Origin: Pavona decussata
Taxonomy: Eukaryota
Direction of reading: 5' to 3'
Assembly (NCBI GenBank): GCA_977016875.1
Contig: CDRNST010000123.1
Location: 4,650,001 to 4,714,000, forward strand
DNA length: 64,000 nt
The notes below the pieces were generated by a model, which had not been told where the DNA came from, searched no databases, and saw only the letters and a list, made by a program, of their open reading frames with translations. The position numbers were made by a program, and so were the translations under genes. Below are positions 48,745 through 57,115 of the stretch, one piece after another (within the stretch, counting starts at the first letter, position 1; each line of letters starts with the position of its first letter).

Positions 48745-48929
48745 CCCTAGTAAAAACGGTATCACGTTGTGATCACAAATCACGGCTGTGATCACCGGCG
48801 TGACACTCCTTTCACCGTGATCACGCCTTCAGCAATGCGTAATTGGAGTGATCACACCCGTGATCAGGGTGTGATCACTCCACTGACCGTGATTCTCTAC
48901 AGAGATAGCGTGATCACGGGTGGTTAGGG
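48745..48929. mobile_element. Small element with CCCTA...TAGGG termini and GTGATCAC repeats (second copy at 52344-52528)
   Basis: Multiple exact or near GTGATCAC palindromes; it truncates ORF 48387. Confidence 0.55.
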
Positions 48930-49330
48930 TAAAATTGAAAATCAAAAACATTACCATCTCATACAAATAGTCCAAAATATCTGTTAACACTAATGGAGTA
49001 AAAAAAAATCATATTCCAGTAAATTAAAGATGTGGTTTAATGACAGCCGAATGACTTACCGCACTAAACTCAGGAGAAATTTGAATCTTTCTTTCACAGT
49101 GCGTGTCGTTCTGGTCTTTCGTTATTGTAACTCTCTGGTTTCGTGGTTCGTTTTTGTTTTTGTGCGTCAAAAGCTTAATCTGCAATATATACGTGTTTTT
49201 TTTCTGTGTTCATCAGTCCTGTACAACATTTTATAGCAGCTTATTAAACGACTAACAATGAATATTATTTGGAGCATAATATTATTATGTTGCCTTCTTT
49301 GTGCTCGATTCATTTTACTTACTCGATCCA

Positions 49331-52300
49331 AGTTAGCTTGAAATTTTATGCATGGTAGCGACTTCTATTTGTCCTTATATTCTTGATTATCTTTAAAATA
49401 ATGTAATAAATAAATTTTTAGAAGTCTGGTGTTAAAACATGTGTCCATATCAACAACACATAATTTATTCATGGCATGTGTGGTGAATTTTCATGATTCC
49501 CACCTTTGAAGCATCAAATTCATGGAAAATTCATGACCCATGAATGTCTCTCCTAATCAAATGCATGGGTCATGAAATAAAATGCTACATTTTCATGGAA
49601 AATTCATGGCCACAAATAAGGCCATGAAATTTAATTTTGCAGTTTTCAGGGGCCATGAAATGCCTTTCATGGGGTATTCACAGAAAATTCATGGCATTTT
49701 CATAAAACTGTGGTTCAAAGTGATATCATTGTGCGGCATCCAGTTTTTAGTTGCGTGCAGCCATGCCTTCTATCACACCTGGATATCTATATGCCAGTCC
49801 ATATGGTTTACAGAGCATCTATTGACAAGTTTGTGTCTTGTTTTTTCTATGTCGACCAGCACCATCTAATATACCATCCCAGTCTTTTGGCTTCTGCTTT
49901 TTAGTAGGGTTGTACACAAATTTATGTCATCATTTTCTGAGAGCTGTCAATTTGGGTTTTGTTTTCTATCACCCGCCTTAATTTTTATGCGGGTTGGACG
50001 GTATGCTAGCCTGTGATAACATGCAGTGATAGCCGCTCTACAATTGTGGAAACCACATAGAACTGTCGTGTGATAACGTGGAAAGAAGTAGTTTAGTATC
50101 GTGTGACTGGATAGACCACCGCGTATGATAACAGGTCATGATAGCATTGCTATTGTGCGACCAACACAGAAAACTGGCGTGGGGTCAACATGTCTTTGAT
50201 AACCAAGCTATTCCGTGATTCAGATTGTGCGACCATCACAGAAAACTGGCGTCTGATGTATCGTGCGACCAACAGAAAACTGACGTGTATTACGTGCATG
50301 TCATACAGTTAGTATGATGTGACTAAGATAGACCACCGCATGTGGAAACGTGTCATGATTGTGTTCCCTATTGTGCGACCAACACAGAAACTGGCGTAAA
50401 GCACTATCTTTGGATCGCTGCCCTGTTTAATTCCATGATCAAAATGTACATACCACACAGAGAACTAGCATGTATCGTGCTACAAAGGTTACACTATTGT
50501 GCGACCAACACAGCAGAAGTCTGGTTTGCGACTACCCCACTCACTGAGGCATTGTCGGGCAGACTTATTGAAACTGTTTGTTTTTTGCAAGCTATTTTTG
50601 AGGGTATTTGCTTGCTTACCTGGCAAAATTGAGTACACCAATTCGTGACCTGCCGCATTAGCGTGATATCACTAGATTTAAGAGCACCTCTGATATGAAG
50701 CAATTTCTTGTTAGCATGTTGCATGCGATAAAGTGATGTCTTACACATCTGCTTGACTTGTTATCTGTTTCTTATTTCCTGTCATTCCGTTTACACTCAG
50801 GAACTTGCCGGCTTGGAAAAAGAGCTGAAAGGAGAGATTAGTTTTCTAAAAGGGACCAACCACACACAGCGGTTCAGCCGTTTGCGTGACAAACTTAAGG
50901 TCTATTGTCACGTCATCAACTTCAACAAAACAGTTGCCCTGAACAAACTACGGGCCACCTTAGACGAAGCACGCTTGTTAAAGGCGTACGACACGGCAAA
51001 ACTGTCAGCTCTATGGGACAGACTCGCCTTCGCTAAACAAGCTGATCGCCAGGTTGACCTACGTGCCACCAGTTTTGCCTGTTTGGCATCTGAGGCTGAG
51101 CGGAAGGCCGACAAACTTGTCTGTTGTTACGAACAGTGATCCACCTCCAGGCAGCCAGTGCAGTTTCGTGGGGAACGCTTTCAAAGCTCCCAAGGTTTCA
51201 GACACGACTTGAATGACGCCGCAGCGGTGCTTCTAGCGACAAATGTTTCGCTTGTGGCAAAGCTAGCCACTTGCCTGTGATTGCCGTAAATGGCACGATC
51301 AACCACCCCCCAAAGAGCTGTGCACAGATACAATAATAAAAGCTTGGTTCTTATGTATTCAATTCATTACCTGTGTATCTCTCTATTGTCCTAGTTCCAA
51401 TGACACACTCTGTCATACATTATCTTTCTTCTGTTCAAGTCATGCTGCCAAATTCTATTGTGCGTGCACACCTGTGTTATGCTGTTATCTTGTGTTGCAT
51501 GTACACACCTGTGTCTTGCTGTGATCTTGTCTTGCATGTGTGCATGCCGTCCTCATGTCTTGCACGTGCCTTGGTGCTATTCTGTCAAATTGTGTTTCAC
51601 GTAGGCACCTATGTCATGCTTCTATCTTGTGTTGCTTGTGCGCACCTCTGCTTTGCAGTCATCTTATTTCGTTGTGAAGCAAGGCTAATCAATTTGTCAG
51701 CCTGAAGACCCGAGCGGAGCTAAGCAGTGTAAATTAAAGTGAAAAACACATTTAAATGTATATAGATCAGTGCGAATTTGTAATAATGTGCTCACTAGGT
51801 CCGGGCATGAAGCCGGGCACCCTCTGGCTTCATGCTCCTGTGGTGATCTAAACTTGAGGGGGCTACCAATGGGTGAGATTGCACAGGGTGAGGGCTAACT
51901 GCTGGGGGGTGGCTCAACCAAGGGGGGTTTTCCTTGGGATAATAAGATTGCACGTTCTTTGTACGTGAAATAGTTTTTTATCCTCATGACTGGGAAAAGA
52001 AAATTGAACGTTATTAATAAAAGATTACTTTTTTTATCCAAATGTTTGGCTAAAGAGGAGAAACATCTTCTGGATCGCTACTCTAAGGGACTTCACCCAT
52101 TTATAAAGTCATCAATAACTGCAGGGAGGGCGTTTTCAGCTGAGGACTTAATTCGCCAGTGGAAAGCAGATACGCAGCCTCCTGCTGATGGCAACACTGA
52201 ATCTGGTTCACCCCGTAAGAAAAAGCGGTTAGAGTCCAAAACAAGCACAAATGACAAGCCCAGAAAGTCGAACAAGGATAAGGCTCACCAAAAGAAGAGT

Positions 52301-52929
52301 ATAGATTCATCTTCTGCTTTGGCTGTTCAGGAGATCATTGCTTCCCTAGTAAAAACGGTATCACGTTGTGATCACAAATCACGGCTGTGATCACCGGCGT
52401 GACACTCCTTTCACCGTGATCACGCCTTCAGCAATGCGTAATTGGAGTGATCACACCCGTGATCAGGGTGTGATCACTCCACTGACCGTGATTCTCTACA
52501 GAGATAGCGTGATCACGGGTGGTTAGGGTAAAATTGAAAATCAAAAACATTACCATCTCATTCAAATAGGCCCAAATATCTGTTAACACTAATGGAGTGA
52601 AAAAAAATCATATTCCAGTAAATTAAAGATGTGGTTTAATGACAGCCGAATGACTTACCGCACTAAACTCAGGAGAAATTTGAATCTTTCTTTCACAGTG
52701 CGTGTCGCTCTGGTCTTTCGTTATTGTAACTCTCTGGTTTCGTGGTTCGTTTTTGTTTTTGTGCGTCAAAAGCTTAATCTGCAATATATACGTGTTTTTT
52801 TTCTGTGTTCATCAGTCCTGTACAACATTTTATAGCAGCTTATTAAACGACTAACAATGAATATTATTTGGAGCATAATATTATTATGTTGCCTTCTTTG
52901 TGCTCGATTCATTTTACTTACTCGATCCA
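49331..52929. repeat. 3599-bp near-identical tandem duplication, copy 2
   Basis: Starts agttagcttgaaatt and ends actcgatcca, as in copy 1. Confidence 0.97.
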
Positions 52930-53999
52930 AGGCAAAAAATCAAGGCTTCTTTTTTGCATGTTCGCGACAAAGCACTGATATACACTGAAAAATATTTTCA
53001 AGGTACGATTCTAACTTCAGTTTTGAGAAATTTAGCGCCTTTTCTCCGAGCTGCATGACACGTGCGTGTCGGAATTTTATCTACAAGTTCTCTTGAGACA
53101 TCTGCGCGTTTAATCTTATTGGCCAAATGTCATGAACCTGTTTCAAATTACCTTTACCTGATCGCGTTACAAAAATGGTCCTGAAAATAAACTCGACCGT
53201 TGGTAATTTGACTTAGAAGAGCGGGAACGTTTTCAATGCGAAGTATCTTCCTTTATTAGTCTGGGAAACAGTTTGATGTTTTGGGTTTCTGAAGCAAAGA
53301 TCTGCACCCGGCCGTTTTGTAAACAACAGACTGTTCCTTCGGATTGTCTCCAACTGTGCAGCCACTTGAATGTTTGAAGTTCGTCGCAATAAATGTACTC
53401 TGATCGAGAACACTCAGAGGACTTCTTTGGTCTGCTGTAAAACGAAATGACTCTTGCCAGTTGTATTTTAGTCTACGTTTCCACAAGGGAAAGAATATCG
53501 AAGAATGTTCCAATTACTGAGGTGAGCAACATGACAATCGCGTAATACAATAACGACGAATTTTTATGTTGAAAGTGATTCCTGGTTAGCATCCTTCTGA
53601 ATCGTAAGAAAATATTAGTTCACGTTTACCTTTGTGGTTCTCAACTTGTCAAAATGTATACTATTTTAGCTTTTTAATTCCACTGCCCAACAGACTGCGC
53701 CGTTCTTTAATGGACGTTCTGCCCCCGCCTCAAATAGCCTCTGAAAGGCTATTACTTTGGGGCAGTATTTTATATACACATATATACTATATATGTAGCT
53801 CATTTTTGACAGTAATGAAATTTGTTGTTGTTATTACATTATTGTACAACTTTTTTAACGTCCTGTATTTTGTGCTTTTTATGTTCTTGTGTACTTCACA
53901 CATAAAGTTAATACTGTGAACATAAGGGTGACTGTGATCACAAGCGTGATCACACTTGTTGTGACATTAGCGCATAAGATCTATACACTATACCATTTT

Positions 54000-56900
54000 T
54001 ATACTTTTAAATGGTGCAACACAAAACGCATGTCGGTCTCATTATTCACCATTGCGATTTAAACGTCCTTCAGACAAAAAATGCTTCAAAAAAGCCTTCT
54101 CAACAAACACACAGCTGAGCTACGAATTAAAACGGATTGAAAATACCGGCACACAATTGGCTACTTTCGTTTCCGGAAAACGAGCCAATGACAAGAGTGC
54201 ACAGCCGATCCCAGCTGAAAATATACCGAGTATAAAAGGGTTGAAAAATCACTTTTTCACGGGATCAGAATTGAGAATTTCTCTACCTATCCCTGAAATA
54301 CTGTACGTTGTCGCTACACAGCAGCTGAAGAGATTCAATAAGAATTGAAACCGCCGGTCCTGCTTAGACCATACATCTTCAGATTTATTCTGAAAACCAG
54401 GTCAGACAACCCTCTAAAGGAGAAATACCTCTCTCCAAGCGAGGAAAATGCCCTTCTTGAAGATACAACAATGGTATCCCCACCAAGGACACCAACACAC
54501 CGTCGTGAACACGAGGTAGACGATTATGATCTCAACCATTTTCCAGCTGATCCGTTCTCAGATACAGAAGAGGCGAGCCCTCCATCATCGCAACTTGAAG
54601 AAAGACACAAAATTACAGAACAAGCTAACCAAAGGCGAACAGAGCCTCTTAAATACAAGAGAAGCCCTTTTAAACCTCCCCTCGATCCACCACAATCGAG
54701 AAAAAGGAACTATAAAAATATGGGCAGCGGAAACCAGACACTGGATTACAAGATCAGCAAGACTCAAGAATCTATCCAGAAACTGGATAAACACTTGAAA
54801 CTAAAGACTTGCCCTAAGTCACTGCACTACACCGCGCGGGCGAACATCACAAAGGAAATTAAAGCTATCAAACAAAGGGCTGAACAAGATCATGTCAGCA
54901 CTCTTAAGCGCTTTCACCAGCGTAGACTAGACAGTCACGCCACAAAACTTAAACAGGCAAAGGCCACAAAAGCTTGTTCCAACAATATTGTATTTTCTCA
55001 GAAAGAGTCCAATTCGCCTTCGGCGGCCCGTGAAAACATTGTAAACAACAACAATGTAAAGATAGGGCACCTTCAAAAAGAAATCGCAGATCTAAAGGAT
55101 CTGCTTTGTACACACTTGCTGAAAGACAATAAAAATGTTGAAAGCTATTACAGTGTGTTTACTGAAAAACCAGCCTCAATATTCATCCCTACAAAACGGC
55201 AAAGGCTCAACAAAAATATCAGGCGCAAACAACGCAGAAATAGCATGACACAAAGGCGAATAGCCAAACAAAGGGAATCAAATGAGAAGTATATCAAAAA
55301 CCTCTCAGACGCAACTTTAACTGACAATCAAGTTAGCGTCATTTCTAAAGGGCTCAAATTCATACCAACACCCATGAGGAATGAAAACAACATCAGGCGT
55401 CAACTCTTGCACGACTTTGAACACTTTGCAAGACGTATGTGCCTCCAGTTTATATTCCACGGTCAAGAGAAGGAACCACATCTGTTCCATGTAAAATCGA
55501 ACTGGATACCCCCAGTTCAATCATCCGTTGCCCTTGAAAGCTACTTAGAAAATGTCAAGTTAGCACTTGCAGAGGTCAAAATAAGAAAGCCAAAATACAA
55601 TCTGTCATACCATGAACACAAAGCAGTTCAAGAACTAAAAAACAATACTGCTATTAACATTAAACGAGCGGATAAAGGCAGTACGACAGTACTTCTCAAT
55701 CGTTCTGAAAAAATACAAGAGCCTCAAGTCCAACTAAACATCTGAGACCATTATAAACCTCTTGCTAAGCCCATGGTTGAGGACACTCTTCTCAGGGTCA
55801 AAGAGATTGTAACTCAACTACACCAAGGCAAACACATTGATGACATGATGAAAAGATGGCTTTCTCAATCCCCACACCCACCAAGGATACCGATATTCTA
55901 CACTCTCACAAAAATCCACAAACCGAAACCGGTTGGGAGACCTATAATAAGCGGTTGCAGTGGTCCAACAGAGAGAATCTCATCCTTCGTTGATCGTTTG
56001 CTACAGCCTATTGCCATTAAACAGAAATCGTATCTCAAAGATACAACTGATTTCATAAACTTCATAGAAAAAACTAAAGTATCGCACGATACAATTTTAG
56101 TATCTATGGATGTCACAAACTTGTACACTAATCTACCACAAGAGGAGGGTATCAATACAGTATGCAAAGCATACAACTGTTTCTACAATGATAGCCCTCC
56201 CATTCCATCACACTATCTCAAAGAAATGCTTGGCCTTATTCTGAAAGAAAACTCATTCCAGTTTAACGGAGTAAACTATCTCCAAATTCATGGAACAGCT
56301 ATGGGAACTAAAATGGCAGTTTCATTTGCCAACATTTTCATGGCGGAAATTGAATCAGAGTTACTAGGCCAGAGCAGAATTAAACTGTTGTCATGGAAAC
56401 GTTTCATTGATGACATATTCTCTCTATGGGACACCAATAAACAAGAGATAGAATTATTTATAGAACAAGCCAACAACTTCCATCCCACGATCAAATTCAC
56501 GGCTGATATTTCAGACAAGAAAATCACATTCCTAGACACAGTGGTGCACAAGGGTGAAAGATTCTCCAAAGAATCTATCCTTGATATCAAAACACATTAC
56601 AAGCCGACTGAAACCTTTCAATATACCCATTTTACCTCTTGTCACCCACCAGGTGTTAAAAGACGTTTCATCAAAGGTGAAGCTATCAGACTTCTCCGAA
56701 CTAACTCCTCAGAAACAGCTTTCAAGGAGTCTCTCTCTAAATTCAAAACATGTCTTACAGCACGTGGATACCCTAAACATCTGATAGAGAGCACACTATC
56801 TGAAATCACCTTCGCCGGAAGGCAGTTGGCACTACAACAAAAGCTTAAGGCTCGTGAGAAAATCCTACGGTTCGTAACTACATACCACCCAGCAGTTACC

Positions 56901-57115
56901 GAACTTAAAAAGATACTGATGCACAAATGCAGCTTTATTCAAAATCAGCCTTTGCTGAAAACTATATATAACACGCCTCCTATTATATCCTACAAAAGAG
57001 GGAAATCGCTTAACGACATACTAGTCAAAGCGAAACTCTGAAGGCTCTAAACATGCGTCGCAACCACAAAACCACAAAAGGGGAGTCAGTGCAGGCCTGT
57101 CACATCATTTTAACC
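54000..57115 (+). mobile_element. Near-complete Penelope-like retroelement, RT only with no GIY-YIG; ORF 54471-57041 with one in-frame TGA at 55743
   Basis: NLS..LT....V.SKGLKFIPTP, IKRADKGS, FYTLTKIHK...GRPIISG, SMDVTNLYTN, QIHGTAMGT, WKRFIDDIF, FLD and HYKPT. ORF ends SYKRGKSLNDILVKAKL*. Confidence 0.92.
54320..54364 (+). ncRNA. Type I minimal hammerhead ribozyme
   Basis: AGCAG CTGAAGA GATTC aataa GAATT GAAA CCG c CGG TC^ CTGCT: complete core with stems I to III paired; predicted cleavage after C54359. Confidence 0.85.

Follow-up and report, generated by a model that had tools for sequence, protein, structure and literature searches.

In a 64,000-nt stretch of the Pavona decussata genome (GenBank assembly GCA_977016875.1, contig CDRNST010000123.1, positions 4,650,001 to 4,714,000 of the forward strand; hereafter the window, whose own numbering is used throughout), we characterized a copy of a Penelope-like element (PLE) whose single open reading frame (ORF) encodes a reverse transcriptase (RT) without an endonuclease (EN) domain. 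Our favoured explanation, to which we assign as a whole a probability of about 0.55, is that this copy represents a stony-coral lineage of RT-only PLEs that has a lineage-specific helical N-terminal extension, carries no EN of its own and primes on 3'-OH ends that it does not make itself. In such a mechanism, the RT would recognize its own RNA through a conserved box near the 3' end, or through a panhandle of the 5' and 3' termini, and would prime on 3'-OH ends made otherwise, such as nicks, breaks or replication intermediates; paired termini would favour end-to-end template jumps, giving rise to tandem units, stacked 3' pieces and inverted twins, and the N-terminal extension may, more speculatively, provide multimerization or nucleic-acid binding in place of the lost linker–EN module. 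In the textbook view, nuclease-less PLEs occur only at the ends of chromosomes, which offer a free 3'-OH at all times. A long-lived coral lineage whose RT is under strong selection yet lands inside chromosomes runs counter to that view, makes concrete how a telomerase-like RT finds a primer in mid-chromosome, and bears on the repeated loss versus gain of PLE nucleases.

The window ORF opens with an ATG at 54471, continues through 57038 and closes with a TGA at 57039-57041, directly after a C-terminus of ...RGKSLNDILVKAKL (ending SLNDILVKAKL); its coordinates agree with the frame of 856 codons, interrupted by one TGA, that an earlier sequence-only reading of this DNA had described. The protein carries the conserved PLE motifs N1–N3 and DKG (pattern NLS..LT..Q..ISKGLKFIPTP plus RADKGS) ahead of an RT core and thumb, its RT can be aligned over the full length with PLE proteins that bear GIY-YIG, and Pfam RVT_1 exceeded its cut-off (E 1.5e-7) on the ORF piece that follows the internal TGA. 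Relatives of the window protein have a precomputed match to PF28514 (DUF8422) at the N1–DKG region, and thousands of relatives carry PF28514 and PF26215; the ESM Atlas returned weak DUF8422 leads only. The C-terminal GIY-YIG domain that canonical EN-bearing PLEs encode in the same ORF is absent: Pfam detected no GIY-YIG in either ORF piece, and a six-frame tblastn search of the 64-kb window with 62 PLE EN tails (one from a resident EN-bearing PLE of the same genome and 61 public) gave a best E value of 0.07. Features of Naiad/Chlamys (N-terminal GIY-YIG, CxC motif and IFD) were likewise not found, the N-terminal 424 aa containing no GIY-YIG and the helical N-terminus a single conserved Cys. 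The earlier identification of an EN-less PLE with no GIY-YIG at either end of its ORF thus holds for the ORF and the window, and it holds for the other copies of the lineage described below.

An EN-bearing PLE of the same genome, with an RT 32% identical to that of the window copy, aligns to the very last residue of the window RT (residue 431 of the piece) and continues past it with a CGKNCATC linker followed by GIY-YIG, so that the window ORF ends precisely at the thumb/linker boundary. That the ORF stops exactly where EN-bearing relatives go on is what would be expected if the window copy were a 3'-truncated or rearranged ordinary EN-bearing PLE. Further copies were collected by a search of the 602-Mb genome with the last 900 nt of the element. 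At least 11 further copies of the same family (family 1; 91-98% identity) were recovered, all ending at 57115 give or take a few bases, with 5' ends scattered over 54249, 54349, 54972, 55045, 55800, 55965, 56050, 56293, 56397 and 56604; such a constant 3' end with 5' truncation at varying points is the hallmark of target-primed reverse transcription, in which a DNA 3'-OH primes cDNA synthesis from the 3' end of the RNA. A second family of the same genome (family 2, studied on 3.5-kb loci; 74% nucleotide identity to family 1) occurs in tandem arrays with periods of 3245 and about 3390 bp; its ORF closes with ...SLKDMLVRAKI and is followed by 71 nt of tail. Comparison of the two families over 338 codons yielded a ratio of nonsynonymous to synonymous substitution rates (dN/dS) of 0.086, indicating that the EN-less ORF has been under strong purifying selection since the families split.

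Beyond this genome, over 2000 relatives were recovered in a word-based protein search; those with names are from the stony corals Montipora, Acropora, Porites and Oculina, and PF01541 is absent from the 120 best. A C-terminus of ...LV(R/K)AK(L/I) is common to seven coral proteins of 709-747 aa, named proteins of Montipora and Oculina stop at this point as well, and among 80 loci on coral metagenome contigs the 41 that reach the last residue stop immediately or, in six cases, 1-8 codons further on. In a metagenome subgroup (L081-L083, L120 and L132) the ORF runs 4-7 codons past ...VRAK(L/I) (PSTKQQS, PLHF, PSIKPQP), and the tails are without the conserved 3' box described below. The ORF end at the thumb/linker boundary is a property of the whole lineage. 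As the sequence-only reading had proposed, copies were checked for a common stop at VKAKL and a common 3' end, and all family copies end at 57115; a continuation into a GIY-YIG domain was found in none of the family-1 copies, family-2 copies, about 40 metagenome loci and named full-length proteins. Every family copy ends on the same base; family 2 (26% nucleotide divergence), the roughly 40 metagenome loci and the seven long proteins share the end residue, then the conserved 3' box; and the dN/dS value reflects selection on the EN-less form. A truncated or rearranged EN-bearing PLE is refuted by these copies, and its probability is negligible.

The window copy itself is dead, with one nonsense codon, one 18-nt deletion and a loss of about 95 nt at its 5' end (Table 1). 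Its internal TGA is private: the position is open in the copy on contig C129 and occupied by R or N in relatives, and recoding as selenocysteine was rejected on these same grounds. The deletion is in frame, follows 54846 and lies inside a conserved N-terminal block, and comparison with the copy on contig C66 (L043) showed that the missing 5' sequence includes the conserved 5' box. The copy starts at 53963, not at 54000 as first read, and is not full length, and the 3' tail first put at about 70 nt measures 74 nt. A 98-codon ORF at 54052-54348, which has a TTG start and no ATG, was not taken as a gene.

Table 1. Features of the EN-less PLE copy in the window (window coordinates).
Feature	Position	Strand	Remarks
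EN-less PLE copy, family 1	53963..57115	+	from own-genome searches, blastn and comparison with the C66 copy (L043)
Remaining 5' leader	53963..54320	+	weakly conserved between families
Type-I hammerhead ribozyme	54321..54363	+	core boxes CUGAAGA and GAAA intact
Single ORF, 856 codons + stop	54471..57041	+	N-terminal extension, PLE motifs N1-N3, RT fingers/palm, thumb; no EN
N-terminal extension	54471..55298	+	disordered part, long helices, basic stretch
PLE N-terminal conserved motifs	55299..55682	+	N1 (NLSDATLTDNQVSVISKGLKFIPTP) through DKG motif (RADKGS)
In-frame TGA, codon 425	55743-55745	+	private to window copy
RT core and thumb	55896..57038	+	FYTLTKIHKP, GRPIISG, SMDVTNLYTN, HGTAMGT, FIDDIF, FLDT, HYKPTE; ends SLNDILVKAKL
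3' tail, 74 nt	57042..57115	+	no poly(A), microsatellite or telomeric repeat
Conserved 3' box	57080..57102	+	GGGGAGTCAGTGCAGGCCTGTCA; in all 24 aligned tails
Family-1 fixed 3' end	57115	+	terminal letters ...CACATCATTTTAACC

Three cis elements are conserved across the lineage, namely a 5' hammerhead ribozyme (HHR), a 3' box and a complementary 5' box. The 3' box (GGGAGUCGUGxAGGCCUGUCA) lies about 13 nt from the end of tails that are otherwise variable. In full-length and tandem relatives, a 5' box GACAGGCCCCGTCCC that pairs with the 3' box is situated some 15 nt inside the true 5' end; in the form GACAGGCCCCGUCCC it is an imperfect reverse complement of the 3' box, and it was located in family 1 (on contig C66), in family 2 and in L066, L067, L071, L090 and L134. 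RNAalifold applied to the two boxes gave 15 pairs, 3 of them with compensatory changes, and a covariance model of the paired boxes found three further junctions. The duplex energies of -24 to -29 kcal/mol correspond to z values of -2.7 to -4.2 against shuffled sequences, and the outer helices vary between families and stay complementary (GGGG/CCCC, GUGA/UCAC, CUUG/CAAG, GGUUG/CAACC and GUUUCAC/GUGAAAC). With complementary boxes at both ends, the termini of the element RNA are predicted to be able to fold into a panhandle; where two units adjoin in tandem, this pairing would produce a hairpin, with the 3' end of the first unit and the 5' end of the second in its loop. A partner for the 3' box immediately downstream of 29 dispersed copies was no better than in control windows, as expected, because the partner sits in the element's own 5' leader and comes to lie downstream only at tandem junctions.

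An associated HHR, as is typical of PLEs, lies 108 nt 5' of the start codon, with its cleavage site after GUC at 54359. The window copy scored 23.6 bits against Rfam HH9 (E 0.018), which is below the gathering score, and two other family-1 copies with an identical core scored 27.6-27.7 bits. Family 2 has kept the HHR with a different helix II loop and a compensatory change from G-C to A-U in helix I, and 12 metagenome loci have it at the same distance from the RT, with four fully complementary helix II stems (GAUUC/GAAUC, GGUUC/GAACC, GAAUC/GAUUC and GAUCC/GGAUC) and matching changes in helices I and III too. Minimum-free-energy folding of the HHR alone was no better than that of shuffled sequences, so that its support comes from core conservation and covariation, not from folding energy. 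An animal retrozyme, made of non-coding tandem units bounded by hammerhead sites, was ruled out, since the RT is under selection and copies end at 57115, not at 54359. An abundant EN-bearing PLE family of the genome (L053-L064) also has a hammerhead-like motif (CUGAAGA...GGCUGG...CCAGCC GAAA), situated in its 3' untranslated region (UTR) about 130-170 nt past the stop of the GIY-YIG ORF and not in the 5' leader; the tail of that family has nothing in common with that of the EN-less lineage.

The N-terminal extension begins with a predicted disordered, acidic and Pro-rich segment (residues 1-86), followed by predicted long helices at residues 87-110, 122-173, 188-217 and 248-276 and then by a basic stretch (RRKQRR, 55221-55238) and N1. 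For the N-terminal 424 aa, AlphaFold2 gave pLDDT values of 75-90 in the helices and a pTM of 0.26, that is, isolated long helices and no confident fold. A hidden Markov model of the block KTCPKSLxYxARANI...AEQ...RFHxRRL (54804-54929), searched against the fetched proteins P0001-P0315, matched only proteins of the coral clade and none of its EN-less sister clade or any EN-bearing protein, which marks the block as a clade-specific addition. A role in multimerization or nucleic-acid binding is a speculative guess from the helical and basic character.

An exhaustive search against 1.84 billion cluster representatives was used to obtain the 150 best matches, whose EN status was assigned from phmmer searches with the EN domain of the resident PLE and from their C-terminal overhang. 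From 112 RT regions, a maximum-likelihood tree (quick search, LG+G4, SH-aLRT) was inferred, unrooted with respect to named clades and without TERT, Athena, Coprina, MjPLE01 or named Neptune/Nematis references. The coral clade (10 rows, support 100) is entirely EN-less and joins (SH-aLRT 94) a 16-row clade without detectable EN (14 EN-less, 2 unclear); the resulting 26-row group is sister (97) to a 19-row, mostly EN-bearing clade. Another clade, of 14 rows and with jellyfish proteins among them, likewise has no detectable EN (13 EN-less, 1 unclear); its sister is a clade of 51 mostly EN-bearing rows. Names were mostly missing for the EN-less sister clade: the named matches comprised a shorter protein of the sea star Patiria with no GIY-YIG match on record, and the same naming search also returned EN-bearing Branchiostoma proteins; a cluster in the other clade without EN yielded proteins of the jellyfish Rhopilema. 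The EN-bearing neighbours of the coral clade have a C-x4-5-C-x2-C linker; a C-x2-5-C-x2-C linker has been assigned to Neptune and Nematis (Craig et al. 2021, PMC8557442).

The lineage may, alternatively, never have had an EN. It might descend from ancestral EN-less animal PLEs, its Neptune/Nematis-type neighbours having gained the nuclease independently, as in the scenario of Craig et al. 2021 in which nucleases were transferred to the C-termini of EN-less animal PLEs (PMC8557442). Two large clades without detectable EN alternate with two EN-bearing clades, an arrangement that makes gains and losses equally parsimonious, and forcing the three groups without detectable EN into one clade cost 72 log-likelihood units (p-AU 0.037), which rejects such a clade only weakly, the group having been defined with the tree already in view. 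On the other hand, sporadic EN-lacking rows inside EN-bearing clades show losses, or else truncated gene models, to be common; EN-bearing relatives share the C-terminal motif ...SLKDxLVRAKL through its last residue; and the placement comes from a tree with neither a root relative to named clades nor TERT, Athena or Coprina references. We consider a primary absence of the EN improbable. A broader proposal, which we regard as doubtful although somewhat less so, is that the coral clade and its EN-less sister clades form an old, unrecognized superfamily of interstitial animal PLEs that would integrate without a nuclease of their own, would use the panhandle of their RNA termini as a device for RT recognition and template jumping, and might be the kind of EN-less animal PLE that gave rise to Neptune/Nematis-type elements on gaining a nuclease.

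Copies lie far inside contigs of 0.8-7.4 Mb, hundreds of kilobases to megabases from the ends, and (TTAGGG)3 was found neither in the 64-kb window nor in 245 kb of loci, in agreement with the interstitial location first proposed; the last 5 nt of the element, TAACC, fit the telomeric repeat by chance, with no repeat tract. Flanks past ...CACATC(A/C)TTTTAACC are mutually unrelated and contain no poly(A), microsatellite or telomeric repeat. Seven of the eight flanked copies have no target duplication of at least 12 bp abutting the junctions, and the C129 copy has a near-perfect flanking duplication of about 309 bp. In the window, the 5' end of the copy adjoins a host repeat (52360-53964) that is cut off there and continues in nine other loci; the rest of the window (6.9 kb) does not contain this continuation. 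A target deletion, template switch or rearrangement would each be consistent with the cut-off repeat. These insertion-site features fit priming on a 3'-OH that the element has not cut.

With regard to copy arrangement, the family displays the variable 5' truncation, partial tandem ('pLTR') and inverted structures of PLEs. The window copy is solitary and free of terminal redundancy, as had been observed, but that observation does not extend to the family, in which full-length 5' ends are usually preceded by the 3' tail of a partial copy. An inverted head-to-head pair was found in L049 and stacked 3' pieces in L043. In a further locus (L016, G000:C66:485308-488549), the terminal 16 nt TCACATCCTTTTAACC stand twice in tandem at the 3' junction, and family 2 (L020-L022) has stacks of up to three copies of a 143-nt unit that comprises the tail and the final 72 nt of the ORF. 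Either pattern resembles the outcome of repeated re-initiation, or of template jumping, at the 3' end of the RNA.

The same arrangements are also compatible with a nuclease supplied in trans. According to this alternative, the element is EN-less as described and keeps its own RT, and only the cut is borrowed, integration relying on nicks made by the GIY-YIG EN of co-resident EN-bearing PLEs. Several observations speak for it and so weigh against our favoured explanation. EN-bearing PLEs are abundant, with 933 first-look candidates and at least 150 GIY-YIG matches that exceed the Pfam cut-off in this genome, and open frames of 700-1000 aa contain many of them. The family includes duplicated tails, tandem units and head-to-head inverted twins; tandem, inverted and 'tail' structures are typical of EN-bearing PLEs and have been attributed to the cleavage properties of the GIY-YIG nuclease (PMC8557442), and in an EN-less family they could as well reflect the action of such a nuclease in trans. 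Further limits of the favoured explanation are that the junction sample is small (8 copies with usable flanks), that target deletions and duplications were read from single loci and that the target-duplication survey covered the EN-less copies. All examined family-1 copies are defective, so that any current activity would be hypothetical. Logan contigs of three presumed RNA runs span 53963-57115 without entering the flanks, but no run is recorded as RNA; these contigs are weak evidence for transcription of the element and are silent on the RNA ends.

Against a borrowed cut stands, to begin with, the fusion of the canonical PLE nuclease to its RT, from which action in cis on its own complex is expected. 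In the commonest EN-bearing family, the 3' UTR is unrelated and contains a separate ribozyme, and the RT is only 32% identical, which argues against sharing of the RT and says nothing on the cut. Linker-bearing PLEs often target (TA)n or other microsatellites (PMC8557442), whereas neither (TA)n nor any other microsatellite target was present at 12 family-1 and about 10 family-2 3' junctions. Furthermore, the EN-less state is old and spread across many coral genera, so that a helper would have to be present continuously. We judge the borrowed nuclease possible but rather unlikely. The sequence-only reading had proposed an interstitial EN-less lineage that uses existing breaks or a nuclease in trans; its EN-less and interstitial nature is upheld, and the choice between breaks and a trans nuclease has been narrowed only weakly.

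EN-less families inside EN-bearing clades are already on record, namely the Neptune-like MjPLE01 of kuruma shrimp and the Chlamys PLE-X families (Craig et al. 2021, PMC8557442), and the coral lineage is, given this published nuclease loss, not a new kind of element. These published cases qualify the earlier premise that described EN-less groups are telomere-associated, which is correct for Athena and Coprina and incomplete for EN-less groups as a whole (PMC8557442). Like MjPLE01 and PLE-X, the coral lineage combines a PLE RT without GIY-YIG with kinship to EN-bearing clades, not to the telomeric groups, and is not confined to chromosome ends; PLE-X occurs genome-wide in Chara and has canonical ribozymes and a unique N-terminal extension (PMC8557442). 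Compared by their descriptions, the coral lineage differs from both in being a large clade (10 clusters at 50% identity, 26 with its sister) and from PLE-X in an N-terminal block without CxC motifs. No specific target was seen for it, in contrast to the 28S rDNA target of PLE-X of spike mosses, and its complementary 5' and 3' boxes are not mentioned for these families in PMC8557442. New features are the size and antiquity of the EN-less clade, an N-terminal domain of its own, a ribozyme placed on the 5' side and the complementary termini.

With Neptune and Nematis, the coral lineage shares the N1–N3 and DKG motifs, a hammerhead ribozyme, tandem and inverted copies and 5' truncation, and its most similar RTs carry a C-terminal GIY-YIG behind a C-x4-5-C-x2-C linker. 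It differs from them in having neither linker nor nuclease, in its long N-terminal extension and in the absence of any microsatellite targeting seen, and from the EN-bearing family of the same genome, whose ribozyme is in the 3' UTR, in placing the ribozyme in the 5' leader about 110 nt before the ORF. The lack of a nuclease, an extended N-terminus and ribozymes are shared with Athena and Coprina, which sit at chromosome ends and whose 3' ends bear short telomeric repeats in reverse complement (Gladyshev and Arkhipova 2007, cited in PMC8557442); the coral element, in contrast, is interstitial, its 3' end reads ...TTTTAACC and no (TTAGGG)n is near any copy. Another likeness is to EN-independent LINE-1 insertion, where an RT drives insertion without a self-made nick and junctions often lack target duplications and show target deletions. 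Such insertion at DNA lesions was reportedly described by Morrish et al. in 2002. For LINE-1, a nuclease-bearing element, this is a rare side route, whereas for the coral lineage it would be the sole one. The fixed 3' end, the pairing of the 3' box with the 5' box, the covarying ribozyme and the clade-specific N-terminal domain offer handles for experiments.

Some minor observations concern the surroundings of the copies. The host repeat next to the window copy is at least 1.6 kb long, is rich in TGATCAC-like words and has many genomic copies at 88-96% identity, its continuation in the nine other loci reading ...tcacagtgccaacatta...; a partial second copy lies in the window at 48761-49332. Two family-2 copies (L026 and L027) end beside a short tandem satellite in which ...ttttagagattccc... 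is repeated. About 1.7 kb from the C129 copy (L044, G000:C129) are two identical tRNA-like genes, 250 nt apart (1589-1661 and 1839-1911), and the 5' leader of the C66 copy (L043, G000:C66) contains a 174-nt near-perfect palindrome (4882-5055) that resembles a miniature inverted-repeat transposable element and weakly matches microRNA-precursor models.

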